Made by a program: the position numbers and the translations under genes
The notes under the pieces: model-generated
Told to the model about the DNA's origin: nothing
Databases searched by the model: none
The model's input: only the letters and a program-made list of their open reading frames with translations
Shown: in pieces, positions 5,820 to 39,110 of the stretch
Layout of the letters: each line of letters begins with the position of its first letter
Numbering within the stretch: the first letter of the stretch is position 1
From: Hyphochytrium catenoides
Lineage: Eukaryota > Protista > Hyphochytriomycota
DNA: 48,127 bases
Assembly: GCA_900088475.1 (NCBI GenBank)
Contig: LT578416.1
Location: 1-48,127 of the forward strand
Direction of reading: 5' to 3'

Positions 5820-5896
5820 GCGAGTTTTTTTTCCTTTATAGACAAAACAAAAATCAGGTTCAACATTTTTAATGGGTTCAAATCCCATGACTCGCT
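5820..5896 (+). ncRNA. tRNA-like element 1 (Gly-type acceptor stem, non-canonical D/anticodon arms)
   Basis: Acceptor GCGAGTT/GACTCGC+T; T-arm ATGGG-TTCAAAT-CCCAT; middle arm AAAAAT/ATTTTT with 10-nt loop. Confidence 0.6.
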
Positions 5897-5963
5897 TCTC
5901 AAAACCAAAGAAAAACCAAAGATATCTTTGAAAATTTAACAATTACAACAACTACCTCAAACA

Positions 5964-6323
5964 ATGCCTCAATTTGATCATTTAACCTTTGCCAGTCAGC
6001 TTTTTTGGTTTTGTACTATTTTCTCCGCTTTTTTTTTAATTTTGACTTATTTATTTTCGCCTGTATTAAGTTTATATGTGAAACTATCACAAAAAAAAAT
6101 AAAATCTCATTTTAATTTTTTGTTAAAACAAGTTTTAAATTTTTTATTTACGATTTCAGTATTTTTATTTCGTTCAAAAAAATTAAATGAGTTTAAACTT
6201 TTTAAAATTTTATTTTTTTCTAGTGTATTATTTTTTAATATTAAAGAAAGTGAAACATTTGAATTTCAAAATAAGAACATCGAGATAAAGCATGAAATTT
6301 TACTAAATCATTTAAAAAAATAA
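5964..6323 (+). CDS. atp8: ATP synthase subunit 8
   Basis: N-terminal MPQFD..F.SQ.FW followed by TM helix and basic region. Confidence 0.9.
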   Translation: MPQFDHLTFASQLFWFCTIFSAFFLILTYLFSPVLSLYVKLSQKKIKSHFNFLLKQVLNFLFTISVFLFRSKKLNEFKLFKILFFSSVLFFNIKESETFEFQNKNIEIKHEILLNHLKK

Positions 6324-6372
6324 ATTTTGCACATTGCCGTATTTATCGATGATTTAACTTTTAAAAATGTTT
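6317..6372 (+). repeat. ~56-bp dispersed repeat after atp8 stop (copy at 38938-38993)
   Basis: aaaataaattttgcacatt.c.gtat.tatcgatgatttaacttttaaaaatgttt, 3 mismatches between copies. Confidence 0.9.
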
Positions 6373-6587
6373 CATGAAACTTAAATGATATGAGATTTTA
6401 ATTTTTTTTTCCAAACAACTTTTTTAAGTATTCTTTTCTTTTATCTCTTTTTTAATTTTAAATTAAACCTTCTATTAAAGAACCAATGATAATTTGTTCT
6501 AATTTAAGTATTTTCTGGATTCCAGTCCCAGCGTTGGTCAATAGATGGCAAAGATATCGTTGAATTCCTTTTTCTAAAAAAACTCGC

Positions 6588-7373
6588 ATGTTTTTTAAAG
6601 TAATAAAACAACTTATTTTTTCAAATAAGTTTAAAATATTTCTTCTTTTAAATGTAATTAACATAATTTGTGTCTTGGTTCTATTCAATGATATAACGAG
6701 CATTTTCGAAAAACTTCAAAACTTTTTTGAAAAAAATCAAGAGACTCCGACAGGATCGGAAGTTTTAGAAGAAACTGTTCAAACAGCTGAAATAAATGAA
6801 ACAAATGAAATAAAACCAAAGGAACAAGAAAACGAGTCGGAGGTAAAACAAACCAAAGAATCATTGATCACCAAACTCAAAAAATATGCTCCTTATGTCA
6901 TCGGTGGCATCTTCATAATGGCTGCGGGATATGCGGGATACCATTTTTTTTGTAATAGTGGAAATGATGGTGGTGGTGGTGGTCCCGATTTTTCACCTAG
7001 CGAGAACATACTGTCGGAAAGCTCAGCAGAAATGACAGAAGAAATAAGACTAATTCCAGAACTGCCACTGAATTTTGTTGATCTTCGAGAAGGTTTTCCT
7101 CCTGGTACTCGAAAGGCTATGGTGTCTATCTTAAAGTATTTACAAGTCGTTACAGCTAGAGAAGACATTGATCAGATTGCTGCTATAGGTAGATACGAGT
7201 ACGCCCTTTGGAAAAATACAGATATCTCGGACTATGAGTCGAAAGAAGATTTAGATGAGCCGCTTATCCCTGAGAATTATGACTTAGACTCATTGGATGA
7301 CGAGCAAATCATAGCATTAATGAAAAAGTTACCATTGTGGGAATTCTGGGAAAATATAGACAAATTCAGATAA
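6588..7373 (+). CDS. Orphan ORF261, two predicted TM helices, paralog of ORF704
   Basis: 261-codon ORF; shares a 190-nt cassette and N-terminal TM with ORF704; acidic tail. Confidence 0.7.
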   Translation: MFFKVIKQLIFSNKFKIFLLLNVINIICVLVLFNDITSIFEKLQNFFEKNQETPTGSEVLEETVQTAEINETNEIKPKEQENESEVKQTKESLITKLKKYAPYVIGGIFIMAAGYAGYHFFCNSGNDGGGGGPDFSPSENILSESSAEMTEEIRLIPELPLNFVDLREGFPPGTRKAMVSILKYLQVVTAREDIDQIAAIGRYEYALWKNTDISDYESKEDLDEPLIPENYDLDSLDDEQIIALMKKLPLWEFWENIDKFR

Positions 7374-7374
7374 A

Positions 7375-7446
7375 GGTGGGATAGTTTAATTGGTAGAACA
7401 ATGGATTCATGCTCCATGAGTAGGGGTTCAAGTCCCTTTTCCATCG
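7375..7446 (+). tRNA. trnM: tRNA-Met(CAU), elongator type
   Basis: Cloverleaf, CAT anticodon, paired 1:72, lacks initiator D-stem. Confidence 0.9.
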
Positions 7447-7468
7447 CATGGAAAATAACAAGATATAA

Positions 7469-7864
<396 letters not shown>

Positions 7865-7869
7865 TTGTA

Positions 7870-8232
7870 ACATCTTCTTCTAAAAAGACAAAAAAAGAAT
7901 TTAGAACCCATTCTCAATTAAGTTTACTAAAAAACTTAAAAGTTGTTAAAAAGAAAAAAAAAAAAACATGTTTTTGTAAAACGAAATCTGTCTGATATTT
8001 TTTTATGGCATTTTTTATACCATTATTTATTGAAAACACATCAAAAATATTCTGTTATTCATTTTTTTAATCTTTTAAGTTATTTAATAACGCCGACCCT
8101 ACATAAATATAAACAATATTTGATAAAAAAACATGTTTTAAAATTAGTGTTAATTTCTTTACTTCCAAAGACCAAATATTGATATATTGATAACCCTCTT
8201 AGATCGAACTTTTAAACAACCTTTCTCTTTAT
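7870..8232 (+). repeat. Duplicated 3' end of rps3 plus spacer (direct copy of 26671-27032); rps3 gene fragment
   Basis: ~363 bp with 3 substitutions and one extra A in a poly-A run relative to 26671-27032. Confidence 0.95.
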
Positions 8233-8243
8233 TAATAAAACCA

Positions 8244-10301
8244 ATGATGATTAAAAGCCTTATCGGATTTCTTAGAAAAGTCTTTTTTATAATTAGTACA
8301 TTTACTATAAAAAACAAATGGAGTGTAATTATTCTATTTAACATTCTTAACATGATTTGTGTGTTGGCTATATTAAATGATCTCACAGTCATGGGCCTTT
8401 TCGAAAAACTTCAAAACTTTTTCGAAAACAATCAAGAGACTCCGACAAGATCGGAAGTTTTAGAAGAAACTGTTCAAACAGCTGAAATAAATGAAACAAA
8501 TGAAATAAAACCAAAGGAACAAGAAAACGAGTCGGAGGTAAAACAAACCAAAGAATCATTGACCACCAAACTCAAAAAACATGCTCCCACGATCATTTGT
8601 GGCCTTTTAGGGGTGGCTGGACTTGTATTCCTTGGCATATGTATTTATCAATATACTTCTGGTGGTGGTGCAGATGTTCCACCTTCTCCACCTTCTCCAC
8701 CTTCTCCACCTTCTTCACAGGTGCCATCAGGTTCTAGAGGTTTGGGGGATCTTCTAGTCGTTTCAGAACAAAACGCGCGTCTTCGAACGAGATTTATGAT
8801 TATGCAGGATATGCAGGATATGCAGGATCTTCCGGCAACTGAGAGAACTCAGGAAATGGAGGAAACGACGCAAGATCTTCCGGAGATACCGGATATTTTG
8901 AAGATTGACGTCATTGGGCCTATTCCAGAAAAGGAGGTTTCTGTTTCAGAACAAAACGCGCGTCTTCGAGAGAAACTTCTGGCGCTGGATGAATATCTGA
9001 CGTTTGACTACACGGGGCCTATTCCAGAAACGACGCAAGATCTTCCGGCAACTGAGGAAGCTCAGGAAACTGAGGAGATTGTAGACATGGAGCAGGTGCT
9101 TGAAAAGATTGAGAAAGATCTAAAACGATATGATAATATTGAACATCTGCGAGTGATGCAGGAAAATGTTCAGAGTAACCCGGAGCTTCACGAATGTCCG
9201 GAGGTTCAGCAACGTATTTTGGATTATATTTATGAACGTATTGAAGAATGTATTGAAAATCAGGGGCTTCGTCAAGATACTCGGGAGATAAAGAAGCTGA
9301 TTGAGTCGGTTGAGGAAGAGCTGAAGGGAGATCATAGTCTTGAACGTCTGAAGAAGATGGAGAATGAGTTGATGAAGAACCCGCTGGTTCAACTTTGGCC
9401 GGAGGCTCAGGAAATCCTTGAGGATAAATTTCTGGAACGTTATAAAGAATGTGAGAAGAAGCTGAATCTTCCGGCAACTGAGGAAATGGAGGAAACTGAG
9501 GAGGAAATGGAGGAAACTGAGGAGGATCTTCCGGCAACGGAGGACCTTACAGAAACTCAGCAAACGGAGCTGCTTGAGTCGATTGAGGAAGAGCTGAAGC
9601 GATATCGTAATATTGAACATCTGCGAGAGATGCAGGAATTTGTTAAGAAGAACCCACAATTACAAAATTGTCCGCAACTTCGGGAACGTATTCTTGATTG
9701 TATTCACGAACGTATTGAATACTGTCTTGATAAGAAGGGGCTTGCAGAAATTCGAGTATATGGTCGTGAAGAGCTGAAAGAACATACTCAACAATATTAT
9801 GGTGAAAAAGGGATACCTGAATCGGAAATGTCTTCTATGGATCGGTATGAGAGGTATCTTGAAGGGGCTCGGGCACGTTTTCCTATACTTCAGGAAATTC
9901 AAGAAATTCTAAAGATTCCTCGTATTCTTGAGATTCCGGGTATAAAGGAGATTTTAAATGTTAATATGGATGAGGTGCCCGATCTTCAGGAAATTCAGGA
10001 TATTGAATTGCTTCAGGACATTCTGAAACAGTTTAAAGAGCTTCCAATCAGTCAACTTTGGCCGGAGGTTCAGGAATGTATTGAGGACTATCTTGAGGAA
10101 CTTCTCTCTGAAGAGGATTTTAATAAGTTTCAGCAAGAGATTCAGAAGATGCTAAAAAAAATGCAGCGGGAGCGAGACTCGTCTGAGCTAGAGGATGAGC
10201 TATTTGATTTCGAGGAAGCGGTTCATCAAGATCTCTTAAGGCGGGTTCGAGAAACTGGCGATGTAAGTATTCTTACTCGATATTATATGAGGTCTAAATA
10301 A
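8244..10301 (+). CDS. Orphan ORF704 (685 aa from first ATG): two TM helices, Pro linker, acidic helical repeats
   Basis: 2.1 kb uninterrupted frame; TTG at 8187, first ATG at 8244; internal ~60-aa repeats; visibly GC-richer codons (GAG, CTG, CCG, CAG). Confidence 0.75.
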   Translation: MMIKSLIGFLRKVFFIISTFTIKNKWSVIILFNILNMICVLAILNDLTVMGLFEKLQNFFENNQETPTRSEVLEETVQTAEINETNEIKPKEQENESEVKQTKESLTTKLKKHAPTIICGLLGVAGLVFLGICIYQYTSGGGADVPPSPPSPPSPPSSQVPSGSRGLGDLLVVSEQNARLRTRFMIMQDMQDMQDLPATERTQEMEETTQDLPEIPDILKIDVIGPIPEKEVSVSEQNARLREKLLALDEYLTFDYTGPIPETTQDLPATEEAQETEEIVDMEQVLEKIEKDLKRYDNIEHLRVMQENVQSNPELHECPEVQQRILDYIYERIEECIENQGLRQDTREIKKLIESVEEELKGDHSLERLKKMENELMKNPLVQLWPEAQEILEDKFLERYKECEKKLNLPATEEMEETEEEMEETEEDLPATEDLTETQQTELLESIEEELKRYRNIEHLREMQEFVKKNPQLQNCPQLRERILDCIHERIEYCLDKKGLAEIRVYGREELKEHTQQYYGEKGIPESEMSSMDRYERYLEGARARFPILQEIQEILKIPRILEIPGIKEILNVNMDEVPDLQEIQDIELLQDILKQFKELPISQLWPEVQECIEDYLEELLSEEDFNKFQQEIQKMLKKMQRERDSSELEDELFDFEEAVHQDLLRRVRETGDVSILTRYYMRSK

Positions 10302-10343
10302 AAAGGACAAAGACATCACATGATTCCGGGAGATCGCGAATAT

Positions 10344-10417
10344 GGCGAATATGGCTTAATCGGTAGAGTTTTAGTTTGTGATACTAACGTGTGCGGGTTC
10401 GAGTCCCGTTATTCGCC
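10344..10417 (+). tRNA. trnH: tRNA-His(GUG)
   Basis: Cloverleaf, GTG anticodon, encoded G-1 opposite C73. Confidence 0.95.
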
Positions 10418-10495
10418 ACACAAAAAAGAAAGTTATTTTGTTTTATATATGGGAGTCATTTAGGTTTTTTTTTGGAAAACTTTCAAGTTTTTGAT

Positions 10496-10857
10496 TTTAC
10501 TTCGAGTTTGATTCTGGCTCTGAATGAACGCTAGTGACATGCTTAACACATGCAAGTTGAATGATATGACAATTGTTATATGTTATATCATAGCGAACGG
10601 GTGAGTAATATATGGGAATCTACCTTACACATTGGGATAATCATACTGGCATGTTTAAATGTTTCTAAAATTTTTATGAAATGTTGAACTTGTTGGGAGT
10701 TGACTGAAACCGTAAGGCGCCGGTCAAGTGAAAATACCAAATAAACTTAAAAAGTAAAGGACAAGTTCCGGTGTAAGATGAGCCCGTAGAGGATTAGGTT
10801 GTTGGTAAGGTAAAGGCTTACCAAGCCTGTGATCCTTAGCTGGTCTGAAAGGATGAA

Positions 10858-10890
<33 letters not shown>

Positions 10891-11072
10891 TCGTTTGAAG
10901 GCAGCAGTGGGGAATCTTGGACAATGGGCGCAAGCTTGATCCAGCAATGTCACGTGAAGGACCAATAAATTTTTCGCCTGGAAGGATTTCATTGGAAATT
11001 GACGACTAAGTCGTAAACTTCGATCATCAAGGAGGAACATGACAGTACTTAGATGAAAGTCCCGGCAAACCT

Positions 11073-11111
<39 letters not shown>

Positions 11112-12312
11112 ATTCAATTTAACTGGGCGTAAAGCGTCTGTAGGCGGCAAGTTTCGTTATTCGGTAAAAATTAAAGCTTAACTTTAAAAGACGGATAAAA
11201 CGTACTTAGCTAGAGTCATAGAGAGGAGAGTAGAATTTCTGAAATAGGGATAAAATCCGAAGATATCAGAAGGAATACCAAAGGCGAAGGCAACTCTCTG
11301 GCTATGTCTGACGCTCAGAGACGAAGGCGTGGGGAGCAAATGGGATTAGGTACCCCAGTAGTCCATGCAGTAAACGATGAGTGCTAGTCTTCAATAAAAG
11401 ACACAGCTAACGCGTCAAGCACTCCGCCTGAGGAGTACGATCGCAAGATTGAAACTCAAAGAAATTGACGGGAGCCTATCCAAGCGGTGGAGCATGTGGT
11501 TTAATGCGATAATACACGCAGAATCTTACCAGCTCTTGACATCATAATTCTTTTGATAGAGATATCAAAAGCTTCTTTATGACAGGCGTTGCATGGCTGT
11601 CGTCAGCTCGTGTTTTGAGACGTAGGGTTAATTCCCGTAACGAGCGTAACCCCTATTCAATGTTGCTGACCCATCGGACTGACTTTTCTTTTTTTTGGAG
11701 AGTGTCAGTTGTTTTATATTTGTTTGTTGACCAAAGATTTTAACAATGTCAATTTGACAAGGCTTAATAGCACGTAAAACCCTTATTTTATCAATGCCCT
11801 TTAGGTAGTCGGTGGCCTTCTGCGGATTTGTTTGGTTTAATAAGTGCGAATGGGCGGATCTCTTTGAAACAATCTGTGAAAATGGATGGAGGTGGGGATG
11901 ACGTCAAGTCCTCATGGCCCTTATGAGCTGGGCTACACATGTGCTACAATGGTAATGACAAAGGGAGGCAATAAAGAATTAAAGATCATTTGGAGCAAAT
12001 CCTTAAACATTACCTTAGTTCGGATTGTCGGCTGCAATTCGCCGGCATGAAGTTGGAATCGCTAGTAATCGTGGATCAGCATGCCACGGTGAATACTGGA
12101 AATAGGCTTTGTACACACCGCCCGTCACATTCCGGAAATTCATTTCTCTCCAAAGTTTTGTATTAACGTATGAAAACAATGTAAGATTCCGATGGTTTTT
12201 CGGAAACCCGCATTGATAAAAGAAATACGAGATATGTTCCGAAAGAGAGGTGGGTAACCAGAGTGAAGTCGTAACAAGGTAGCCGTAAGGGAACTTGCGG
12301 CTGAAGACAACT
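10496..12312 (+). rRNA. rns: Small-subunit rRNA (ends approximate)
   Basis: GAGTTTGATTCTGGCTC, GTGCCAGCAGCCGCGGTAA, GTACACACCGCCCGT, AAGTCGTAACAAGGTAGCCGT. Confidence 0.97.
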
Positions 12313-12517
12313 TTAAAATCTCCCATATCTCCTATATTCCCCAATCATCTCTAAAAGAGAAACGTCAAAGTGTCCAAAGTGTCTCTTTTTTTATGATGAT
12401 TCTTGTATTTGATTGTATTTGAAGATTGAAAAGTCGAAAAGTGTTTGAGATACACTTTAAAATTTTAGAAACACCTATATAAAATATATAAACAATTTAA
12501 ACATTAAAATGAAGAGA

Positions 12518-12589: not shown

Positions 12590-12630
12590 CATGTCACATT
12601 TCTTAATCCATCTAACGGTTCAACTTGATA

Positions 12631-21420: not shown

Positions 21421-21619
21421 TTTTTAAAAGTTTAATGAAACCCAAAGAGTTTGAACCCAAAGATGACTCTCGTCTATAAGTCCCTTCAAAAAAGTATTTT
21501 TAGAAAAAGAATGGTTCACTAACGGGTTTGAAAAACCGTGTCCTTTTTTCTTTTAAAAAAGACATCTAGGAATCAAAAATTTCTTTGGGTTTCATCAAAC
21601 AGAAAAGATTAAAAAAAAA

Positions 21620-22384: not shown

Positions 22385-22756
22385 TTAAACAAGAAAAGAT
22401 AACAGAGACACGATCTTTAAATCTTTTGACTTACGCAATTCTTGTGTAGAGGGCCCAAAAACCCGACTTCCAATGGTTTTTTTTTGTTGATTTAATAAAA
22501 TGGCGGCGTTCTCTGAAAATTGGAGAAGGCTGCCATTTTTACGTCTAAGGGATATGCTTGTTCTTATGACTAATGCTTTACACACTTGTCCTTTTTTGAC
22601 TTTAAGTTTTTGACTTTGAGACACTTTAATTTTTTTTAAAGACACAAGAATAAGATCGCCCACTTGAGCTTGTTTTTTTTTTAAAACTTTAATGCACTGA
22701 GCGACTTTTGCCCCGGAATTATCAACAATACGTAAAGAGGTTCGAGGTTGTATCAT
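22385..22756 (-). CDS. rpl14: Ribosomal protein L14
   Basis: MIQ..T.L.IVDNSGAK, F.ENAAILL, GSRVFGP. Confidence 0.97.
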   Translation of the reverse strand: MIQPRTSLRIVDNSGAKVAQCIKVLKKKQAQVGDLILVSLKKIKVSQSQKLKVKKGQVCKALVIRTSISLRRKNGSLLQFSENAAILLNQQKKTIGSRVFGPSTQELRKSKDLKIVSLLSFLV

Positions 22757-22787
22757 TGTATCATGATTGGTTTCAAATCATAAGAGT

Positions 22788-22860
22788 TAAGCCCAGTAGG
22801 AATTGAACCTACAACTTTTCCGTTATGAGCGGAACTTTCTACCTCTTGAAATATGGGCTT
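22788..22860 (-). tRNA. trnI: tRNA(CAU), probably lysidine-modified tRNA-Ile
   Basis: Cloverleaf, loop CTCATAA, AAGCCCA/TGGGCTT-A acceptor resembling Ile2 rather than Met. Confidence 0.8.
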
Positions 22861-22937
22861 CCTATATTTTATATCTTTTATTAGATTGTTTTTAGAAAAT
22901 TTGACAATATGACAATATTAGAATATTAAAGAATGTC

Positions 22938-23576
22938 TTATTCTTTTATTCGTACCACAGCATTTTTCATTTGTCGTGATAATTGTTGATAAATATATTG
23001 ACGTCGGCGTTGTTTTTGATCTTGATCTCCGGCCAACGTCACTGCACCAAGTAACGCAACTAAAAGAATTAATCCTGCAATTAAAACATCGAAAAAATAG
23101 ACATCATACAACAAATAACCAAATCCTTCTATATCTTTTTGTAAATTCATTGACGCTCGGGTTGGTGAGGGTACAAGACGATCTCCATAAAGTTTTTTTA
23201 AAGAAAAATTGAAATCAATAAAATCTGTTGTTGAAATGCCGATCTGTTGTTGCATAACATAAAAAACAGCTAAAAAAAAAACAAGTCCTATTAGAAACCC
23301 AATAGGTAAATCTTGGAATAAGGTATATTGTTTTTTTTCCTTTAATGTCAACATCATAACAACAAATAGAAATAAAATCGCGATAGCTCCAATATAAATC
23401 ACTAAAAGAAGTAATCCAAGAAATTCAACACCTAAAAAAAAAAGTAATGCAGAATTACTACAAAAAACTAAAACTAAATATAACACGGCATGTACGGCAT
23501 GTTCCACTCGGATAACCATCATGGCAGATCCAAGTAACATTGTGGTTAATGCATAAAAAAAAAAGAATTCCATCAT
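22938..23576 (-). CDS. nad6: NADH dehydrogenase subunit 6
   Basis: VHAVLYLVLVF, IYIGAIAILFLFVVMML. Confidence 0.97.
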   Translation of the reverse strand: MMEFFFFYALTTMLLGSAMMVIRVEHAVHAVLYLVLVFCSNSALLFFLGVEFLGLLLLVIYIGAIAILFLFVVMMLTLKEKKQYTLFQDLPIGFLIGLVFFLAVFYVMQQQIGISTTDFIDFNFSLKKLYGDRLVPSPTRASMNLQKDIEGFGYLLYDVYFFDVLIAGLILLVALLGAVTLAGDQDQKQRRRQYIYQQLSRQMKNAVVRIKE

Positions 23577-23650
23577 TTATATTTTTTTGTATGTTAAAAG
23601 AAAAAAAAAGAGAGAAAAAGAGAAAAAGAAGCGCATACTCGTTTGTTTGG

Positions 23651-24058
23651 TTAAATCTCTGAAGAAATCCATGTTTTGACTGACAATTTATTTGATGCGC
23701 TTTTTAAGGCATTATAAGCTAATGCGGGTTTTACGCCAGATATCACACACAAAACACGTCCTGGTTTTACACATGCAACCCAAGAGCTTACGGATCCTTT
23801 CCCTTTTCCCATACGAACTTCAATAGGTTTTTTCGTCACTGGAGTATTTGGAAAGATTTTAAATTGTAATTTTCCCATGCGTTTTAATTTCCTTGTTACA
23901 ACTTTACGTAAAGCTTCCATTTCTTTCGCGGAAATTCGCCCAAGTTCTAAGGTTTTTAATGCATGTCCTCCTGGAGATAAAATGACTTTGGCTTCTGTTC
24001 CTCGAAGTTTCCCTTTAAAAACTTTTTTATATTTCGTTTGTGCGGGTCGAGATAACAT
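23651..24058 (-). CDS. rpl16: Ribosomal protein L16
   Basis: P..TKYKK..KG, TKKPIEVRMGKGKG. Confidence 0.98.
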   Translation of the reverse strand: MLSRPAQTKYKKVFKGKLRGTEAKVILSPGGHALKTLELGRISAKEMEALRKVVTRKLKRMGKLQFKIFPNTPVTKKPIEVRMGKGKGSVSSWVACVKPGRVLCVISGVKPALAYNALKSASNKLSVKTWISSEI

Positions 24059-24353
24059 CGAAGATCCTCATTACTGAAAAAACATTTAAACTTTTGAGAG
24101 TTCTTTTCTCTGTACATTATTTCATTGATTTTTCTGTTGAACCTGCTTTGTTTCGGGCCTTTTTCTTTAAAAGCATTTCGACTTCTCAAGGCGCTTTTTG
24201 TATTTTCGAAAATTTGTAGAATATGGATAGAAAAAGCTATTTAACCTTTTACCAAATTCTATTTTTTAAGTACACAAATCCGTATTAACAAAAAAATTTC
24301 CTGTTAAGGTAGAAGCTTAACAAATTACAAAAACGTATGATAAAAATAAGATT

Positions 24354-29693: not shown

Positions 29694-30494
29694 ATGAAAG
29701 TCTTCAAAAAAAAATATATGAAATATTGCCCAGAAACATTAAAAAAAATGAAAGATAAACAAATTTTTAAAATTTTGATGGAACAAAAAATACATTTGGG
29801 ACATCATCGACAAAATATTAAAAAAGAATTTAAAACCTATTTACATTCTTTTTTTAATGATTATGGTATTATAAATTTAAAAAAAACTTTAATGCAATTA
29901 CGCATTGTAATGAATATTGTATTTAATCTTGGACTAAAAAATGGTAATATTTTAATTATTGATTCTTTTTTGATAAATGGGAAAAGTTTAGACCTTTCAA
30001 TTCCATTTGAAGGAATTTTATGTTTAAAACAATCTGATTGGATTCCTGGTTTGTTATCTAATAAAAAACATGTTAAGAATACAATGAAACAAAATCTTTC
30101 AAAAAAAAATATAAAAACTTTTCAAAAAGATTTATCTGAAACATTATTAAATCATATTGATTCTATTGATTTAATTGTTATTATAGATCCACTTGCTTGT
30201 ATAGATATTATAAATGAAGCTTCTATTACAAATACACCTATTATAGCATTAGTAGATTTAAATGGTTTTCTTCAAAATATAGATTATCCTATAATATGTA
30301 ATAATCAAAATCGAAATAGTGTTTTATTTATTTTGCAACTTCTTTTTAAAGCATATGAAAAAGGCACTTTATATCAAAACGATGTTGATAAAAAAATTTT
30401 TATGAAAAAAAAAAGAAAAAATGTTTCAATTTATTTTGAAAAACAAGATCGTAAAAAGGATTTCATTGTAAAAGAAAAAAAAAAAAATAGATGA
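29694..30494 (+). CDS. rps2: Ribosomal protein S2
   Basis: IHLGH, IINL.KT, WIPGLLSN, EA....PIIALVD.N, IDYPI..N. Confidence 0.93.
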   Translation: MKVFKKKYMKYCPETLKKMKDKQIFKILMEQKIHLGHHRQNIKKEFKTYLHSFFNDYGIINLKKTLMQLRIVMNIVFNLGLKNGNILIIDSFLINGKSLDLSIPFEGILCLKQSDWIPGLLSNKKHVKNTMKQNLSKKNIKTFQKDLSETLLNHIDSIDLIVIIDPLACIDIINEASITNTPIIALVDLNGFLQNIDYPIICNNQNRNSVLFILQLLFKAYEKGTLYQNDVDKKIFMKKKRKNVSIYFEKQDRKKDFIVKEKKKNR

Positions 30495-31264
30495 ACAGAT
30501 TATTAAAAAAAAAATTTCAAAAAAGGACAAAAATTCAATGGATTTCTTATTTTAAAAAACATTTTCGTCGAAATGGGAATGTTTTATTTGTACGTCCTTT
30601 TGTTTTTCATAAATTACATTATGATAAGTGGAAAAAATTAAAAAAATTTTCATGGAAAAATTATAGACAGTCATTATATAAATATAAAAACCCTTCTTCC
30701 CTAATTAAATATGTTAAAACAAAAAATATTTATTGTCATTCTATTTTATATCAAAAACAATTATTTAAAATTTTATATAAAATTCCATCTGAAAAACAAC
30801 TAAAAATATTCTTACGTCAATTTTATAAACGAAAAAAAACACGTCAGCGTTTTTATTCGTCAATACAAAGACGTTTAGATTTTTTTTTATTAAAAATTAA
30901 GTATGCGGGTTCTCTTGAAATAGCTCGTTTTTTAATTAAAAATCAATTTATTTTGATAAATGATAAAATTATAACGCAATCGAATTATTTAATAAGATGT
31001 CATGATATCTTATCTGTTGATTATCGTATACGGAATTATGTTTATTTTAATCTTTTAAGAAACAAAACCAAAAAGAAAAAAAAAAAAAGAAAAAAAAAAT
31101 ACAAAAATGTTTTGGGTAATAAAAAAATGTTAGGTTTACCAAAAATTTTTGAAATAAACTACCGAACATTAGATGTTATTCTTTATAATGATTTTAAAAT
31201 TAAGCATTATAAAACAAAATATGCGTTAAATCTTGATATTATACAAAAAATATATAGAAGATAA
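30491..31264 (+). CDS. rps4: Ribosomal protein S4
   Basis: KQ.FK..Y, RRLD..L, S...AR..I....I.IN S4 domain; ATGA overlap with rps2. Confidence 0.88.
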   Translation: MNRLLKKKFQKRTKIQWISYFKKHFRRNGNVLFVRPFVFHKLHYDKWKKLKKFSWKNYRQSLYKYKNPSSLIKYVKTKNIYCHSILYQKQLFKILYKIPSEKQLKIFLRQFYKRKKTRQRFYSSIQRRLDFFLLKIKYAGSLEIARFLIKNQFILINDKIITQSNYLIRCHDILSVDYRIRNYVYFNLLRNKTKKKKKKRKKKYKNVLGNKKMLGLPKIFEINYRTLDVILYNDFKIKHYKTKYALNLDIIQKIYRR

Positions 31265-31286: not shown

Positions 31287-31354
31287 GAATTTGTTGTGTT
31301 TCCGATTCACAATCATTCAAAAATGATTTTTGGGCTCAAATCCCATCAAATTCA
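31287..31354 (+). ncRNA. tRNA-like element 3
   Basis: Perfect acceptor GAATTTG/CAAATTC+A; GTG/CAC arm; ATCATT/AATGAT arm with 4-nt loop; TGGG-CTCAAAT-CCCA T-arm. Confidence 0.65.
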
Positions 31355-31387: not shown

Positions 31388-31768
31388 ATGATTAAAAGAA
31401 AAAAAATTAAAAAATATGATTATAAATTTAAACTTGAAGCTTATGATATCAAAATTTTACAACAAGCAAATCTTTTTTGGAAAGAACTTGCAACCTCATT
31501 ACATTTAAACTTAAAAGGCCCTGTTTTTTTACCAACGAAACAAAAAAAAATTATTTTATTAAGATCACCACATATTAACAAAAAGGCTCGAGAAAAATTT
31601 ATTTTTTGTCGTTATCGTTATTTATATACTTTAAAAAGCTCTGCAGAACAAATAGAATTTGTTTATCAATTTTTATCTTTAATTCAAAAAAGTGCAATAG
31701 CTGGTTGTTCTTTTACAATACAAAAGACAATGAAAACAACACTTAAAAAACGTAAATATTATTTATAA
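31388..31768 (+). CDS. rps10: Ribosomal protein S10
   Basis: GPVFLPTK, LRSPHINKKARE.F. Confidence 0.95.
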   Translation: MIKRKKIKKYDYKFKLEAYDIKILQQANLFWKELATSLHLNLKGPVFLPTKQKKIILLRSPHINKKAREKFIFCRYRYLYTLKSSAEQIEFVYQFLSLIQKSAIAGCSFTIQKTMKTTLKKRKYYL

Positions 31769-31912
31769 AATAAAATATTGGGGTAGTTTTCAAAAAAGAC
31801 GTATTAGCTTTTTTATTTTATATTCTTTTAGAAGAAAAATTCTATAAGTTTTTTTTTGAAATACTGAAATAATTAAAAGTTGAACTCGATAGCTATGAGT
31901 TTTAATATATTT

Positions 31913-32165: not shown

Positions 32166-32167
32166 TA

Positions 32168-32345: not shown

Positions 32346-32363
32346 GTTTTAATTGGTGACGTC

Positions 32364-32442: not shown

Positions 32443-32458
32443 ATTTCAAGTGCATTTT

Positions 32459-32532
32459 GGGAACATAGCTTAATTGGTTAGAGTATTAGCCTGTCACGTT
32501 AATGGTTGCGGGTTCAAATCCCGTTGTTCTCG
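32459..32532 (+). tRNA. trnD: tRNA-Asp(GUC)
   Basis: Loop CTGTCAC, G73. Confidence 0.95.
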
Positions 32533-33333
32533 ATGCGGGTATATAAAAGGAATCAAAAATTAAAAGAAAAAAACGTTTGTTGGGGTTCTATTTCCAGCCC
32601 CCTCGAACAGTTTGATATAATACCACTTTTTATTCTTTTATGGTTAGGTTTTGATATTTCAATTACAAATTCTACACTTTTTACTTTAATCGGTACTGGT
32701 TTTTTTATTTCATTGTCTTATATGGTTTTTTTATTAAATACATTTATTATTAATCATTGGCAATATGTTTTAAAAGAACATTTTTTTGTGGTATTAGGTT
32801 TAATTTCTGAAAATATTGGAGCTGCCGGTAAAAAATATTTTTCTTTAATTTTTGCTTTATTTTCTTTTATTCTTTTTTCAAATTTAATTGGAATGGTTCC
32901 TTATAGTTTTACGATTACAAGTCATTTAATTTTAACTTTTGGGTGTGCTTTATTATTTTTTTTAGGTATTAATTATATTGGGATTAAAAAACATAAACAA
33001 CATTTTTTGAGTCTTTTTTTACCAAGTGGTTCAACAGTCTTTCTTGCCTTAATTTTAATTCCGATTGAACTTATTTCATATTTATTTCGTGTTGTGAGTT
33101 TACCAGTACGTCTTTTCGCAAATATGATGGCAGGTCATACTCTATTAAAAGTTATTGCAGGATTTGCATGGACTATGATGGCGGCAAATGTCATTATTTT
33201 TTTTTTTCACTATATACCAACACTTTTATTAATTATTTTAATGGGTCTTGAATTAGGTGTTGGGATCATACAAGCTTATGTCTTTTCGATTTTAGTTTGT
33301 ATGTATCTGAATGATGCATTACATTTACATTAA
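32533..33333 (+). CDS. atp6: ATP synthase subunit 6 (a)
   Basis: SPLEQF, NLIGMVPYSFT, VRLFANMMAGH, IQAYVF; ATG abuts trnD. Confidence 0.98.
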   Translation: MRVYKRNQKLKEKNVCWGSISSPLEQFDIIPLFILLWLGFDISITNSTLFTLIGTGFFISLSYMVFLLNTFIINHWQYVLKEHFFVVLGLISENIGAAGKKYFSLIFALFSFILFSNLIGMVPYSFTITSHLILTFGCALLFFLGINYIGIKKHKQHFLSLFLPSGSTVFLALILIPIELISYLFRVVSLPVRLFANMMAGHTLLKVIAGFAWTMMAANVIIFFFHYIPTLLLIILMGLELGVGIIQAYVFSILVCMYLNDALHLH

Positions 33334-33379
33334 TTATTGAGAGTTTTTTTTATCAAAAGATGGTGTTTTTATTGTTATA

Positions 33380-33928
33380 ATGGTTCTAAAAAAAAAAAAA
33401 GAATTATATTACACAAATATTATTCTTAATTTTTGGGATTCACCTTTTTCGCCATCTGTAAGTGTTTTTTGTCATTTTTTAAAAAATACAGAAACTTCAA
33501 AAAAAAGACAATTAGTACCGCAAATGAATGAAATGCGATTTGTAAAAAAACAAATTTTTTTAAATTTTTTAAATCAAAAAACACACCAATTTTCATCTCG
33601 TATCAACGGACGTTTGCTAATTGCTTGTGGATCTTTTTCTACAATAAATGTTACAACTTTATTGCAAATGAATGCATTTAATTTCTCTTTTATTGGTATG
33701 AATTGGAAAAATTTTTATTTTTCTGATTCTTCTTTAAAAAGTATACATTTATTTAAAAAAATATTTCAAAGCAATGATTTCCCAGAATTAAATCAGAAAT
33801 TAACAGAATATTTTATTTATAATTTATTAATGGCAACAGTGCTTACAAATTTGAATCAATATTCTTTATTCAAATTAAAAACACTAATGCTTTTTTCTTC
33901 AAATAATTTGATAAGTCCTCAAAGATAA
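33380..33928 (+). CDS. ORF182, probable divergent ribosomal protein L10
   Basis: KKK-helix, VFCHF strand, FVKKQIFLNFL and INGRLLIA are spaced like the uL10 'vvKNtl..al...l.Gp..ia' pattern. Confidence 0.55.
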   Translation: MVLKKKKELYYTNIILNFWDSPFSPSVSVFCHFLKNTETSKKRQLVPQMNEMRFVKKQIFLNFLNQKTHQFSSRINGRLLIACGSFSTINVTTLLQMNAFNFSFIGMNWKNFYFSDSSLKSIHLFKKIFQSNDFPELNQKLTEYFIYNLLMATVLTNLNQYSLFKLKTLMLFSSNNLISPQR

Positions 33929-34007
33929 TAATCACATGGAAACATGTGGGACCCGACCTCTGTTTATTATCTTTCTAAAATTTTTTATGTTTTATTAATA
34001 AAAAAAA

Positions 34008-35486
34008 ATGATGAATAATCTCTTATTTTATGTTTTAATTGCACCGCTTTTTGCAGCTATTATAATTTTAATGACTCCAAAAAAATACGATAATTTTATT
34101 CGACAATTTGGATTATACGCAAGTTGGGGAATTTTTGGATTATCTTCATGGTTATGGTTTTTATTCAATGAAAATACTTCGAAATTTCAATTTTTAAAAT
34201 CTTTTCCTATTTTTGAAGAATATAATATTCATTTTGTTATAGGAATCGATGGTATTTCATTATTTTTTATACTACTAGTTACATTTCTTTTTCCTCTATG
34301 TATTTCGGGAAGTTTTAAAAAAATAAAACTTCATGAAAAAGAATATTTTCTATGTTTTTTTATTATGGAAAGTATGTTAATTGCAGTTTTTAGTTTATTG
34401 GATATTTTATTATTTTATGTTTTTTTTGAAAGTGTTTTAATCCCAATGTTTTTAATTATTATTATTTGGGGCTCGCGTGAACGAAAAGTACGTGCTGGTT
34501 ATTTATTATTTTTATACACATTAGTTGGATCTTTAATAATGTTATACGCTATTTTAGATATTCATGCTAAGTACGGTACAACAAATTATTTAATATTATT
34601 AACAACTACATTTCCGGAAACCTATCAACATTTTGTTTGGTTAGCTTTTTTTATTTCTTTTGCTATTAAAGTACCTATGGTTCCATTTCATTTATGGTTA
34701 CCAGAAGCCCATGTTGAAGCACCAACAATGGGTTCTGTAATTTTAGCTGGAATTCTTTTAAAATTAGGAACTTATGGTATTTTGCGTTTTTTAATTGCTC
34801 TTTTCCCACTTGCAACTCATTATTATACTCCATTTGCCTATACTCTTGCAAGTATTGGCGTTATTTACGCATCTTTAACAGCTATTCGTCAAAATGATAT
34901 GAAACGTATTATTGCTTATGCTTCTGTCGCACACATGAATTTAGTTGTCATGGGTTTATTTTCATTAACTATTCAAGGAATCGAGGGTGCAATTTTACAA
35001 AGTATTAGTCATGGTTTTGTTTCTAGTGCTTTATTTTTATGTGTAGGTGTTCTTTATGATCGTCACCATACTCGTTTATTAGAATATATAGGAGGTGTTG
35101 TTTTAATTATGCCAATTTTTTCTATTATTTTTTTATTTTTTACTATGGCTAATATTGCGTTTCCATTAACAAGTAGTTTTGTTGGGGAATTTTTAATTCT
35201 TGTAGGAGTTTTTGAAAGCAATACTTTTGTTGCTGTTTTAGGATCAACTGGTATGGTTTTAGGAACGATTTATTCTTTATGGCTTTATAATCGAATTTGT
35301 TTTGGACAAATTAAAGAAAAATATATTAAACAATTTTCTGATTTAACTCATGAAGAATTATCTGTATTTGTTCCTCTAATTTTTGCGACATTATTTTTAG
35401 GGATATATCCCCGTTTGTTATTAAAAGCATTGCATTTTTCTGTTATTGCCTTGATCAGCCATACGACAATGCATATGTTTTTATGA
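34008..35486 (+). CDS. nad4: NADH dehydrogenase subunit 4
   Basis: GIDGISL, KVPMVPFHLWLPEAHVEAPT.GSVILAG, SHGFVSSALF; TGA stop. Confidence 0.99.
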   Translation: MMNNLLFYVLIAPLFAAIIILMTPKKYDNFIRQFGLYASWGIFGLSSWLWFLFNENTSKFQFLKSFPIFEEYNIHFVIGIDGISLFFILLVTFLFPLCISGSFKKIKLHEKEYFLCFFIMESMLIAVFSLLDILLFYVFFESVLIPMFLIIIIWGSRERKVRAGYLLFLYTLVGSLIMLYAILDIHAKYGTTNYLILLTTTFPETYQHFVWLAFFISFAIKVPMVPFHLWLPEAHVEAPTMGSVILAGILLKLGTYGILRFLIALFPLATHYYTPFAYTLASIGVIYASLTAIRQNDMKRIIAYASVAHMNLVVMGLFSLTIQGIEGAILQSISHGFVSSALFLCVGVLYDRHHTRLLEYIGGVVLIMPIFSIIFLFFTMANIAFPLTSSFVGEFLILVGVFESNTFVAVLGSTGMVLGTIYSLWLYNRICFGQIKEKYIKQFSDLTHEELSVFVPLIFATLFLGIYPRLLLKALHFSVIALISHTTMHMFL

Positions 35487-35589
35487 TTTCAAATATGTAC
35501 TTTATGGCAATATTAACGCATGATATTTGGTTGACACTTCAACATTTAATATTGTATTTCTAAAACGTTTATCGATTAATGAGGAATTT

Positions 35590-35955
35590 ATGTTAAAAAC
35601 AAAATATAATTATTTTTTTTTATTTATTTTTTTACTATTTAGTTTATTTTTAACGGCATTAATTTTTTCATTGTCTTATTTTATTGCAAATCAAAATGAA
35701 GATATTGAAAAAGTATCTCCGTATGAATGTGGTTTTGATCCTTTTGAGGATGCGCGAAACCAAGTAGATATTCATTTTTATTTAGTTGCAATTTTATTTA
35801 TTATATTTGATATTGAAGCCGCATATTTATACCCTTGGGCAGTTTCTTTAGCTAATTTAGATTCGTCTAGTTTATGGGTATTTATTGATTTTCTTGTTGA
35901 ACTAGCTGTTGGTTTAGTTTATGCATGGAAATGCGGTGCTTTAGATTGGGAATAA
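35590..35955 (+). CDS. nad3: NADH dehydrogenase subunit 3
   Basis: [31 protein letters not shown]. Confidence 0.98.
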
Positions 35956-36062
35956 TGTTAAATTCAAGTTCATTTTTTTTTTTTCAATTTAACATTTCAT
36001 TAAATTTATTTTTTAACTCATATGTTCTATTCCTGTTTATAAAATTTATTATTCAACAATTT

Positions 36063-36866
36063 ATGATGAAAAAATATCAAACATTACATCCATATCATAT
36101 TGTAGATAAAAGCCCATGGCCTTTTTTATCAAGTATTTGCGTTTTTTCATTAACAGTAGGAGGTGTTGCTTATATGCATTTTTATCTTAAAGGAAAAACT
36201 TTGTTTTTTATGAGCCTTCTGTCTTTAACTTATGTTTTATCAAAATGGTGGAGAGATATTATTCGTGAAGGAACTTTCGAGGGACAACATACACGTGCCG
36301 TTCAAAAAAGTCTTCGAATTGGTATGATTTTATTTATTGTTTCAGAAATTATGCTTTTTTTTGCTTTTTTTTGGGGATTTTTTCATTCAGCTTTAGCACC
36401 AGTACCTGAAATTGGATCGGTATGGCCTCCTTTAGGTATTGAAACACTATCTCCATGGGGAATTCCGTTATTAAATACTTTAATTTTATTAACTTCAGGA
36501 GCAACAATTACTGTAGCACATCATGCTATTGTTGCAGGTAAATATGACTGGGCAGTTTTTTCTCTTTTAGCCACAATTGGTTTAGGAATAATTTTTACTT
36601 TTTTACAATATGAAGAATATAAACATACCACTTTTACAATGGCAGATGGTGTATATGGTTCTACATTTTTTTCTTTAACAGGTTTACATGGATTTCATGT
36701 TTTAATAGGAACTATTTTTATTGCTGTGACCACATCAAGAGTTTTTCTTGGCCATTTTTCCCGACAACACCATTTTGGCTTTGAAGCCAGTGCGTGGTAT
36801 TGGCATTTTGTTGATGTAGTATGGATTTTACTTTACATCACAATTTACTGGTGGGGCGGTAAATAA
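36063..36866 (+). CDS. cox3: Cytochrome c oxidase subunit 3
   Basis: HPYHIVD.SPWP, TGLHGFHV, WYWHFVDVVW. Confidence 0.99.
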   Translation: MMKKYQTLHPYHIVDKSPWPFLSSICVFSLTVGGVAYMHFYLKGKTLFFMSLLSLTYVLSKWWRDIIREGTFEGQHTRAVQKSLRIGMILFIVSEIMLFFAFFWGFFHSALAPVPEIGSVWPPLGIETLSPWGIPLLNTLILLTSGATITVAHHAIVAGKYDWAVFSLLATIGLGIIFTFLQYEEYKHTTFTMADGVYGSTFFSLTGLHGFHVLIGTIFIAVTTSRVFLGHFSRQHHFGFEASAWYWHFVDVVWILLYITIYWWGGK

Positions 36867-36872
36867 TATTAC

Positions 36873-37919
36873 ATGACGAAAATGATGAAAATGATGAAAA
36901 TGACGACAATGTTACAAAATTATAAAAACAAAATTCTAATATATTTTCAAATTTTCCCTTTTTTTTTCGTCTTGTTTGCATTTTTTTTCCTAACAAGTTA
37001 TGGGATTTTATTCTATTTTTTGGTAAACCGTTCTTCAGAAACAGCAGAAATTTTGACGGCTCATTTAAATTTTTGTTTATCTGATGGTTACATAAATTTA
37101 AAAGAAGAAGAACAATCTTCAAAATCATCTAACATTGAAATCATTCGTGTTCAAAAAAATTATGTTCTTCAAGTAAATACAGAAACGGCTGATATTACAA
37201 TAACATTGACCGATGAAATGCAAGAGGAATTAACTCGAAATATGAGTATAAAAACGAACCTCGAAAATATTATGGAAGATTTTAAAAATCCTGAATATCG
37301 TCAAAAATTTATGAGCCACCCTCTGATGGATAAAGCTATTATGAATTTGCAAAAATCTTTTGAACTTTCAAAACAAGATAATATAGATCCAAAAACTTTT
37401 CTAATCGTGGCTTTTGTAACTATAGGTCTTTCAATTGCTGGTGGATATTACATTCATTATTCTTTTAAAAATGAAATCATGTCTTTTTTAAATTCTTTAA
37501 ATTTAAACAAAAATGATATGTCTTCTATTGCAGATCAAGAAAAAGCTATAAAAAATTTTATAAAAAGTTGTTTTGAAACACAGATTGCTTTGCTTAAAGA
37601 GGAACTGTCTGCACTGAAACAAGAATCCATTCCTGTTGGAAAGATATTAGTAGGTCAAAAAGGAATATTTGATCAAGATCAAAAATTGTTTAAACTGACT
37701 ATGTCACGTTTTTCAGTTTTTGATGCTCGTATAACAAATTTAGAGGGTGCTATACAAAATTTAGATTCTCTTGTTTTAAATTTAGAAACCCTTTTAAATA
37801 TACAAGAAAAAATTTTAAAATCTGTCGCAGCAAAAAAAGAAGAATCATTTGATAAAAATGATATTATAATTAGTATCGTATCAGAAATTTTTGATATGTT
37901 GAAATCTAAAAAAAAATAA
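36873..37919 (+). CDS. Orphan ORF348, two TM helices plus coiled-coil tail, paralog of ORF310
   Basis: 348-codon frame; shares FKNPEYR.KF..HP and IHYSFKNEI.SFLNSLNL with ORF310. Confidence 0.8.
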   Translation: MTKMMKMMKMTTMLQNYKNKILIYFQIFPFFFVLFAFFFLTSYGILFYFLVNRSSETAEILTAHLNFCLSDGYINLKEEEQSSKSSNIEIIRVQKNYVLQVNTETADITITLTDEMQEELTRNMSIKTNLENIMEDFKNPEYRQKFMSHPLMDKAIMNLQKSFELSKQDNIDPKTFLIVAFVTIGLSIAGGYYIHYSFKNEIMSFLNSLNLNKNDMSSIADQEKAIKNFIKSCFETQIALLKEELSALKQESIPVGKILVGQKGIFDQDQKLFKLTMSRFSVFDARITNLEGAIQNLDSLVLNLETLLNIQEKILKSVAAKKEESFDKNDIIISIVSEIFDMLKSKKK

Positions 37920-38011
37920 CAACCTTCCCTTTTATTTTATAAACGGAGCCTATCGACCGACAGATAGTCCCCGTTCTCTTCTCCTATTTCCTTTCCCGTA
38001 TTAGACTATAA

Positions 38012-38944
38012 ATGATTTTTTTTCCGAACCAGTTACAAGAAAAGTGGTACTATTGGTACCATACCCTTAAAATTTCATCAACGGTTTTTTTCTTATTTTT
38101 ATTTCTGGTGATCCTTATTTTAAATATCGTAAGTCGTCAAAGCTTTTTTGACAATGCAGAAAATTTCATAGTTTCTTTAAACTCTATTTTATCTGAAGGG
38201 TCGTTAATTTTGGATGAACATGAGAATTCAACTAATTTAACAAATGAGACTAAAGAAAATACTGCAATATCTGACGATATTCAAAAGGAAGAAATTGAAA
38301 CTCCAGAAGATTCTATAAAAATGACTTTAGATGACATTTTGGAAAATTTTAAAGATCCAGAATATCGTAAAAAGTTTATTAATCATCCTGCCGTAGAAAA
38401 AGCTGTTTTTAATTTACAAAAAGCTATTGAAAATACAAAACAAGAGGATATTGATATAAAAGTTTTTCTAGGGATAACCGCTATATGTGTAATTGTTACA
38501 CTTGCTGGTACAATTATAATACACTATTCTTTTAAAAACGAAATCATATCTTTTTTAAATTCTTTAAATTTAAAAAAAGATGATAGTTCGATGTCTAATC
38601 TAGAAAAAGCTTTAAAAGATTTTATACAAAGTTGCTTACAAACTCACTCAGAAATCTTAAAACAAGAAGCTGATCATATTAAAGAAATTTTAAATAATCA
38701 AGAGGTAAATAAGAATTTAACAGATGTTCTAATTAACCGTCTTTATGTTATTAATGATCAAATCAAAAATGTTGTCAGTTCACTAAAGAGGTTGGAAGAC
38801 TTTGAGAAAAGTATCAATAAGCTTTTAAAAGCGCAACAACCAATTTTTATAGATTTAATAGCGAAAAATGACGCTGCTTGTGAAAAAGTGGATGCTGTTC
38901 ATAATGTACTTTCTCAATTGCTACAATCGAGACCGAGAAAATAA
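38012..38944 (+). CDS. Orphan ORF310, tandem paralog of ORF348
   Basis: 310-codon frame with the same architecture and motifs. Confidence 0.8.
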   Translation: MIFFPNQLQEKWYYWYHTLKISSTVFFLFLFLVILILNIVSRQSFFDNAENFIVSLNSILSEGSLILDEHENSTNLTNETKENTAISDDIQKEEIETPEDSIKMTLDDILENFKDPEYRKKFINHPAVEKAVFNLQKAIENTKQEDIDIKVFLGITAICVIVTLAGTIIIHYSFKNEIISFLNSLNLKKDDSSMSNLEKALKDFIQSCLQTHSEILKQEADHIKEILNNQEVNKNLTDVLINRLYVINDQIKNVVSSLKRLEDFEKSINKLLKAQQPIFIDLIAKNDAACEKVDAVHNVLSQLLQSRPRK

Positions 38945-38993
38945 ATTTTGCACATTACTGTATGTATCGATGATTTAACTTTTAAAAATGTTT
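38938..38993 (+). repeat. Copy of the atp8 stop/3' flank (6317-6372)
   Basis: 56 bp, 3 mismatches, begins at the stop codon in both places. Confidence 0.9.
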
Positions 38994-39039
38994 AATTAGA
39001 TTTAAATTATATTTTTTTTTATTATAATAAAATAACATC

Positions 39040-39110
39040 CCGAGTTTTTGTTCCGGTTCAAAATACTTAAACTTCTTTTAGTATCTTTGGGCTCAAATCC
39101 CATACTCGTT
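39040..39110 (+). ncRNA. tRNA-like element 2
   Basis: CGAGT/ACTCG acceptor core; TTTG/CAAA arm with TTCCGGTT loop; ATACT/AGTAT arm; TGGG-CTCAAAT-CCCA T-arm. Confidence 0.6.

Follow-up and report, generated by a model that had tools for sequence, protein, structure and literature searches.

The window analysed here covers positions 1-48,127 of contig LT578416.1 from Hyphochytrium catenoides, a stretch of 48,127 nucleotides (nt) corresponding to an AT-rich mitochondrial genome of ~48 kilobases (kb; 30.5% GC). Bacterial-type large and small rRNA genes are present, together with 26 tRNA genes as called by ARAGORN and the usual respiratory and ribosomal protein genes. Three tRNA-like elements that lack a usable anticodon are located between these genes (Table 1). 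E1 precedes atp8, which belongs to the Pfam family YMF19, and is also present as an inverted copy; E2 precedes rps10 and E3 precedes nad2. Each element shares its strand with both neighbouring genes and is placed 34-195 nt before a start codon. Soil metatranscriptomes are among the sequencing runs that contain the window DNA.

Shared features of the elements

The elements display a common T-arm. The sequence TGGGYTCAAATCCCAT is found in E1, its inverted copy, E2 and E3, giving four exact matches in the window where 0.02 are expected from shuffled sequences. This bears out a preliminary description of the window, which had placed the three elements and the inverted copy at these positions and had noted a core gene downstream on the same strand together with acceptor stems that are unlike in sequence yet still paired. 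The acceptor stem of E1 comprises 7 base pairs (bp), GCGAGTT/GACTCGC with one G-U pair, that of E2 also 7 bp, GAATTTG/CAAATTC, and that of E3 5 bp, CGAGT/ACTCG. Descent from different tRNA genes explains better than the earlier reading, covariation within one family, why these stems differ and still pair. The elements are not one uniform or designed family, and the common T-arm, which is probably in part a product of convergence or exchange, is no proof of a single origin.

The internal arms are far more variable. TTCC does occur in the first loop of all three elements, as previously described, but is not a conserved feature, since the orthologues of E2 display TTTCG in the sister species and GAAAGG in the relative L006. 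The first loop of E3, TTCCGGTT, fits the ordinary D-loop pattern Y16-Y17-G18-G19. The loop at the anticodon position never has 7 nt, again in line with the preliminary description, which had also counted the 12 nt of E3 correctly. E3 combines a 5-bp stem with this loop; in E2 the stem is either 5 bp long and closed by 6 nt or 6 bp long and closed by 4 nt. A corresponding loop in E1 could not be sustained, as neither fold nor sequence reveals a convincing D or anticodon arm.

The tRNA finders reject the elements as tRNAs. None of the 26 tRNAs called by ARAGORN in the window coincides with E1, E2 or E3, and none of the elements is matched in the window by Rfam at the gathering threshold. When short windows are submitted to Rfam, the tRNA model assigns 21.0 bits to E2 (threshold 29) and 18.3 bits to its L006 orthologue, compared with 49-71 bits for the real tRNAs of this genome; E1 obtains only 19.2 bits, on the tRNA-Sec model (threshold 47), and E3 is without a match up to E=10. 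A functional tRNA would be expected to have a 7-nt anticodon loop and an anticodon kept among relatives, and all three elements lack this combination. The T-arm motif of plant mitochondrial t-elements, GGTTCRANYCC, is exact in E1 and its inverted copy and has one mismatch in E2 and E3 (GGCTCAAATCC). A relaxed scan for an acceptor stem plus T-arm and a scan for the plant T-arm motif uncovered no convincing further member.

Origin and conservation of E2

Relatives of the window genome were collected via nad2, rps10 and rps4 protein searches; a metagenome scan with the rps10 alignment was dominated by bacterial S10 genes and provided no useful locus. In the sister species (Logan run SRR30502219; contigs L001, L004 and L005) nad2 is 91% and rps10 78% identical to the window proteins. 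The rps10 identity is 59% for L006 and 36-39% for L088, L089/L090 and L091. In these last three relatives the gene order is rps4 - trnR(ucg) - rps10 - trnQ - trnI - trnE, and the window displays rps4 - E2 - rps10 - trnQ - trnI - trnE. E2 therefore occupies the slot of a genuine trnR(ucg) in three distant relatives. Its acceptor stem agrees with this position. Global alignment of the elements to all tRNAs did not discriminate between them, because it was driven by T-arm similarity to trnS(gcu), and synteny was used instead together with a comparison of acceptor stems and T-arms, arm by arm, across 60 tRNAs. Among these 60 tRNAs the best acceptor match to E2 is provided by the trnR(ucg) stems, (A/G)CATTTG/CAAATGT, with 11/14 positions identical.

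Orthologues of E2 without a usable anticodon occupy the same slot in the sister species (L004:783-850) and in L006 (24-97). For P0122 only the T-arm and the 3' acceptor strand are presumed, from a translated open reading frame (ORF) whose start, MGSSPIEFNK, matches their translation. The window, sister, L006 and P0122 lineages form one clade with L087 in the rps10 tree (96/96 support), and the genomes that bear trnR fall outside it. The rps10 gene of L087 (1551-1900) is readable only with a frame shift at an A-run, where an X was put at the break for the tree; this break probably reflects a mistake in the assembly of the Logan contig. All lineages place E2 at a similar distance from the rps10 start codon, ~25-34 nt, and the D-loop of the window E2 has lost its GG. 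L089 holds both trnR(ucg) and trnR(acg), a redundancy that would have allowed trnR(ucg) to stop decoding. In the window the spacer between rps10 and trnQ, which is the site of trnR(acg) in relatives, is 69% identical to that of the sister species and contains nothing recognisable. At most a faint, internally deleted trace of trnR(acg), ATAGCT...GAGTTCAACTTTTAA, can be discerned in this spacer (31769-31912; minus strand, ~31866-31905), and it is not conserved in the sister species.

The earlier suggestion of retired tRNA genes is thus well supported, through the presence of E2 in the trnR(ucg) slot of three relatives and of E1 in the trnH slot of one, and through the lack of a tRNA for Arg(CGN), Gly and Thr in this genome. 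Position and acceptor stem provide good support for E2 as an orthologue of trnR(ucg) that would have stopped decoding.

The pattern of substitutions reveals how E2 has changed since. The arms of the orthologues were aligned by hand in a script, as MAFFT misplaced the 3' strand of the anticodon stem. Between the window and the sister species 64/68 positions of E2 are identical (94%), compared with 94-100% for real tRNAs, 69-90% for spacers and 60-71% for 4-fold degenerate sites (binomial P < 1e-4 at a neutral difference of 25-30%). All four changes are at unpaired positions, in the D-loop, the loop at the anticodon position, the variable region and T-loop position 54, a distribution with a chance probability of ~0.03. 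L006 has the same D, anticodon and T stems and the same T-loop as the window, while its flanks are unalignable; of the three stem changes, two keep a pair (A-U to G-U) and one creates a pair. In contrast, the D-loop differs at 5/7 positions and the loop at the anticodon position measures 6 nt in the window and 11 nt in L006. The latter loop reads UCAAAA (window), UAAAAA (sister species) and UAUUGAUUUUU (L006), and its variation between window and sister species implies that no anticodon is being preserved. A neutral pseudogene would change at the neutral rate, in stems and loops alike, and E2 does not follow this course. The high identity relative to 4-fold sites and the exclusive location of the changes in unpaired positions therefore indicate that the E2 cloverleaf is under purifying selection. 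Among the elements, of which E3 has no orthologue, such selection is clear only in E2.

E1, E3 and the tRNA complement

The ancestry of E1 is suggested by L092, where the gene order is trnK - trnA - rps14 - trnH(gtg) - atp8 and the T-arm of trnH, ATGGGTTCAAATCCCAT, is 17/17 identical to that of E1. Similarly, the best acceptor match to E1 among the 60 tRNAs is the working trnH of the window itself (10/14), and a G precedes E1 like the extra G-1 of tRNA-His. The sister species also contains E1 before atp8 (L005:1726-1868), with an identical 5' acceptor strand, a T-arm identical at 15/17 positions and a 3' acceptor strand identical at 5/7. Thus, acceptor stem and T-arm are together 27/31 identical between the two species, compared with ~50% for the core, which is 67 nt longer in the sister species. 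Conservation of the acceptor/T-arm half only marginally exceeds the neutral level (P 0.02-0.08), and the core appears to evolve neutrally. Most likely, E1 descends from a trnH copy that has stayed at its original site before atp8 and would have retained only the acceptor stem and the T-arm.

E1 belongs to an inverted repeat of 254/257 nt, between whose arms lies a 5.4-kb block extending from cob to trnY; this block could be flipped. The old rps14-trnH-atp8 order is broken in the window exactly at E1, one copy of which follows rps14-cob on the minus strand while the other precedes atp8. Both repeat copies contain TAAAATACTTTTTT ~35 nt upstream of E1, at 5772-5785 and 159-172 (-), and the sister species has kept this sequence; another site, with one mismatch, lies upstream of the large rRNA gene at 21488-21501 (-). 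As a promoter TAAAATACTTTTTT is a weak candidate at best, since with 2 mismatches allowed its frequency in the window does not exceed chance.

E3 lies in extra DNA of patchwork composition, which consists of a copy of the atp8 stop-codon region (86%), E3 itself and an internal piece of rps14 (83%). The sources of both flanks, atp8 and rps14, are the two old neighbours of trnH. E3 and E1 have the acceptor stem and the 5' stretch in common (CGAGTTTTTKTTCC), and E3 and E2 have in common the D-arm and an unusual C at the first T-loop position. This double likeness may go back to an older E1 that was still intact, to gene conversion, or to coincidence in AT-rich sequence. Comparison with the sister species marks E3 as what appears to be a recent, species-specific copy. 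Closer to nad2, in its leader (window 39190-39305; L001:1575-1693), the blocks GGTGGGGGTAAAACAT, TCCCGAC and ACCTGCCTTTTTTT are shared with the sister species and far better preserved than the spacer around them; they could act as a promoter, a processing site or a binding site. Two paralogous ORFs upstream of E3, at 36873-37919 and 38012-38944, encode ~310-350 amino acids without a Pfam match and have a stretch in common (37429-37518 / 38496-38585) that is 83% identical; related ORFs of ~305 amino acids are located before nad2 (L001:646-1563) and after atp8 (L005:2281-3207) in the sister species.

The tRNA complement of the genome is reduced. ARAGORN calls no tRNA gene for Arg(CGN), Gly or Thr in the window, and its protein genes use 274 CGN, 482 GGN and 442 ACN codons, so that the organelle must import the corresponding tRNAs. 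In the distant relative L091 trnR(ucg) and trnG(ucc) persist, and trnR(acg) is present in L089 and L087. The distribution of these genes points to a recent and stepwise loss accompanied by import. The window also contains seven tRNA-Met(CAU) genes, and one such gene lies with ORFs inside a second pair of inverted repeats of ~1.6 kb (22644-24269 / 46504-48127). Both window ends fall within repeats, and the assembly may therefore have broken there.

Table 1. Location of the elements, of the repeats and flanks around them and of associated genes; coordinates refer to the window unless a contig is named.
Feature	Position	Strand	Remarks
TGGGYTCAAATCCCAT sites	59-74 (-), 5873-5888, 31331-31346, 39088-39103
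E1, acceptor stem and T-arm relic, most likely of trnH	5820-5896	+	68 nt upstream of atp8; L092 synteny, sister copy L005:1726-1868
E1, inverted-repeat copy	51-126	-	~160 nt downstream of cob on the minus strand; one T (in a T-run) fewer than E1
E2, cloverleaf, probable trnR(ucg) relic	31287-31354	+	7-bp acceptor, 3-4-bp D stem, 5-bp anticodon stem, 6-nt loop, T-arm TTGGG-CTCAAAT-CCCAT; from fold, Rfam and orthologues
E3, probable young copy	39040-39110	+	195 nt upstream of nad2; E1-like 5-bp acceptor, E2-like D-arm and T-arm (CTCAAAT)
Inverted-repeat arm with E1 copy	1-254		partner 5690-5946
Inverted-repeat partner arm with E1	5690-5946		partner 1-254
E3 upstream flank	38938-39021	+	86% copy of 6317-6400 (atp8 stop codon and following sequence)
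E3 downstream flank	39118-39181	+	83% copy of internal rps14 piece (reverse complement of 1717-1780), sense orientation
rps4	30491-31264	+	stop codon 22 nt before E2
rps10	31388-31768	+	start codon 34 nt after E2
atp8	5964-6323	+	YMF19; downstream of E1
nad2	39305-40792	+	downstream of E3
trnH(gtg), working copy of window genome	10344-10419	+	ARAGORN; best acceptor match to E1 among 60 tRNAs
trnR(ucg), genuine, in E2 slot	L088:749-822; L089:978-1053; L091:13383-13458		three distant relatives

Proposed role, rival explanations and known systems

On balance, the elements are probably relics of mitochondrial tRNA genes that no longer decode, with E2, and perhaps E1, kept as a processing signal for RNase P and RNase Z, and the punctuation system proposed in the preliminary description is plausible. 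In the ancestor of the clade, trnR(ucg) would have lost its usable anticodon loop and kept its four helices and T-loop. From then on E2 would have evolved at a rate comparable to that of the slowest-conserved real tRNAs, its D-loop, anticodon loop and variable region being free to change. The trnH copy before atp8 would have been reduced to the acceptor stem and T-arm of E1 and then duplicated in a short inverted repeat, the second copy landing after cob, and E3 would be a recent species-specific copy in the patchwork spacer before nad2. The elements would be co-transcribed with their neighbour genes, and the cloverleaf, or the acceptor/T-arm half alone, would still be recognised by mitochondrial RNase P and RNase Z. 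Cleavage by RNase P at the 5' edge and by RNase Z at the 3' edge would free the 3' ends of the rps4 and cob mRNAs and the 5' ends of the rps10 and atp8 mRNAs. The tRNAs for Arg(CGN), Gly and Thr would be imported.

Several observations weigh against relics maintained as processing signals. The T-arm of E2 is nearer to those of trnH and E1 (15-16/17) than to that of trnR(ucg) (9-10/17), so that the histories of the elements are apparently mixed in part or convergent. L087 lies inside the E2 clade and has an rps4-rps10 spacer of only 22 nt without an element, with trnR(acg) kept beside trnQ; the element is therefore dispensable. E1 of the sister species has lost two acceptor pairs and has one T-stem mismatch. 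The minimum-energy fold of E3 is not a cloverleaf, and the 130-nt nad2 spacer of the sister species (L001) aligns with the nad2-proximal part of the window spacer and lacks E3 and ~240 nt around it. The case for selection on E2 rests on the rates and the location of changes in three sequences, and the compensatory changes for which these orthologues were inspected do not occur as double-sided covariation (RNAalifold). The public reads consist of sparse, low-depth assembled contigs in which the depth over E2 derives from A-rich matches and no contig bridges or ends at E2. The acceptor/T-arm half is generally regarded as what RNase P and RNase Z require for recognition, and the conservation of the D and anticodon stems of E2 exceeds these needs, leaving room for a further role.

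Part of this evidence would fit elements that are all neutral tRNA pseudogenes, without present function and slow to disappear. The species-specific E3 in its patchwork DNA, the decayed core of E1 with a 67-nt length change between sisters, the weakened stems of the sister E1, the empty slot of L087 and the missing covariation are all consistent with this explanation, which is nevertheless rather unlikely given the behaviour of E2. The identity of E2 between the sisters exceeds that of the 4-fold sites and of the neighbouring spacers, its stems and T-loop are unchanged in L006 despite 59% rps10 identity and unalignable flanks, and the spacer between rps10 and trnQ, empty in the window at the trnR(acg) site of the relatives, indicates that an unused tRNA gene does vanish on such a timescale. 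An action at the DNA level, in which the elements are short dispersed repeats that drive recombination and inversion of the mitochondrial genome and are copied thereby, rather than selected as RNA, would account for the inverted repeat with E1 around the 5.4-kb segment, for the rupture of the ancestral rps14-trnH-atp8 order exactly at this repeat and for the copied atp8 and rps14 fragments that flank E3. It is improbable for the set as a whole, since E2 is single-copy, is fixed in position across the clade without an associated rearrangement, and changes in a manner that avoids paired positions, which is the signature of an RNA structure and not of a repeat.

Two further explanations would assign an activity to the RNA itself. 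tRNA-Val and tRNA-Phe are structural RNAs of the mitoribosome in mammals, and E2 could likewise be a stable small RNA with its own role, for instance in the mitoribosome, instead of a mere cutting mark. The retention of all four helices and the T-loop, beyond the half usual for RNase P and RNase Z, is in agreement with such a role, and Rfam at the gathering threshold finds no 5S rRNA in the window, a result that does not establish its absence, as mitochondrial 5S rRNAs often escape standard models. The own-role reading is without direct evidence and L087 dispenses with the element in this slot, which makes it very improbable. The wider proposition, that E2 is a long-lived anticodon-less cloverleaf RNA derived from trnR(ucg) and selected across a stramenopile clade either as an RNase P/RNase Z mark or as a small RNA with its own role, for example in the mitoribosome, has a little less than an even chance of being correct. 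Working unconventional tRNAs for Arg(CGN), Gly or Thr, which would decode after editing or through an anticodon in an odd loop, would match three missing specificities with three distinct elements in a genome that uses CGN, GGN and ACN heavily, and E2 does occupy the trnR(ucg) slot. The first loop of E2, UUCCGAU in the window and UUUCGAU in the sister species, even presents a YCG flanked by U and A, like an Arg anticodon loop. This first hairpin was rejected as an Arg anticodon arm, because the first loop of L006, GAAAGGU, is an ordinary D-loop with the usual GG and no NCG, and because the window loop would read CCG, which accounts for only 13/274 CGN codons. In addition, close relatives differ in both the sequence and the length of the loop at the anticodon position, internal arms are lacking in E1, the sister species has no E3, and ARAGORN and Rfam reject all elements as tRNAs. 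The earlier alternative of non-canonical or edited tRNAs thus finds no support and is extremely unlikely.

If relics kept for processing are the correct explanation, a mitochondrial tRNA gene can outlive decoding as a shape, not as an adaptor, once other tRNAs take over, trnR(acg) first and imported tRNAs later. One small clade would then combine the true gene in its outgroups, a selected anticodon-less relic in four lineages (one of them known from a translated ORF start only) and complete loss in one, and therefore offers a clean natural series for asking whether mRNA-end formation alone maintains a cloverleaf. For annotators, the lack of tRNA-Arg(CGN), tRNA-Gly and tRNA-Thr is real here and implies import, and the elements are not to be annotated as odd tRNAs.

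Compared with ordinary mitochondrial tRNA genes (Rfam RF00005), the elements display a similar acceptor stem and (T/C)TCAAAT T-loop, and E2 and E3 the four-arm layout. In contrast, they lack a 7-nt anticodon loop and a conserved anticodon, remain under the scoring threshold and, in the window E2, have lost the GG of the D-loop. A likeness is also found in the trnX(nnn) of sponge mitochondria (PMC11886574), tRNA-like structures that lack an anticodon loop, and in sponge tRNA pseudogenes that occupy ancestral positions, from lineages that have lost many tRNA genes. Both cases combine lost tRNA genes and presumed import with cloverleaf-like relics in ancestral positions that lack a usable anticodon arm. 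The sponge case differs in its animal hosts, and the passages of PMC11886574 consulted give no rate-based evidence of selection on the relic. In the tRNA punctuation model of Ojala et al. 1981, as cited in PMC11886574 and PMC3790967, cloverleaves between the genes of a polycistronic transcript set the mRNA ends. The marks of that model are working tRNAs, and in the window retired tRNAs would be maintained solely as punctuation marks.

Plant mitochondrial t-elements are treated by Forner et al. 2007 (PMC1920247) and reportedly by Hanic-Joyce et al. 1990. They are homologues of tRNA genes found via the T-arm motif given above, coincide at their borders with mRNA ends, and are cut by RNase P and RNase Z and given a CCA tail, although they are not aminoacylated (PMC1920247, PMC11658184). 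The elements described here resemble them as tRNA-derived, non-canonical and non-decoding cloverleaves with the T-arm motif and a protein-gene neighbour on the same strand; homology to a tRNA gene with a non-canonical cloverleaf is found in E2 and E1, and the T-arm motif, position and strand also agree. In contrast to t-elements, they occur in a stramenopile protist with a compact 48-kb genome and are known from sequence alone. The kind of system is already known in plant mitochondria and it is the evolutionary series that is instructive. E2 would, if this explanation is true, be a protist counterpart of plant t-elements, with a birth from a named tRNA gene that is traceable step by step. Unlike in the plant t-elements, the probable ancestry of two elements can here be traced by synteny to specific lost genes, trnR(ucg) and trnH.

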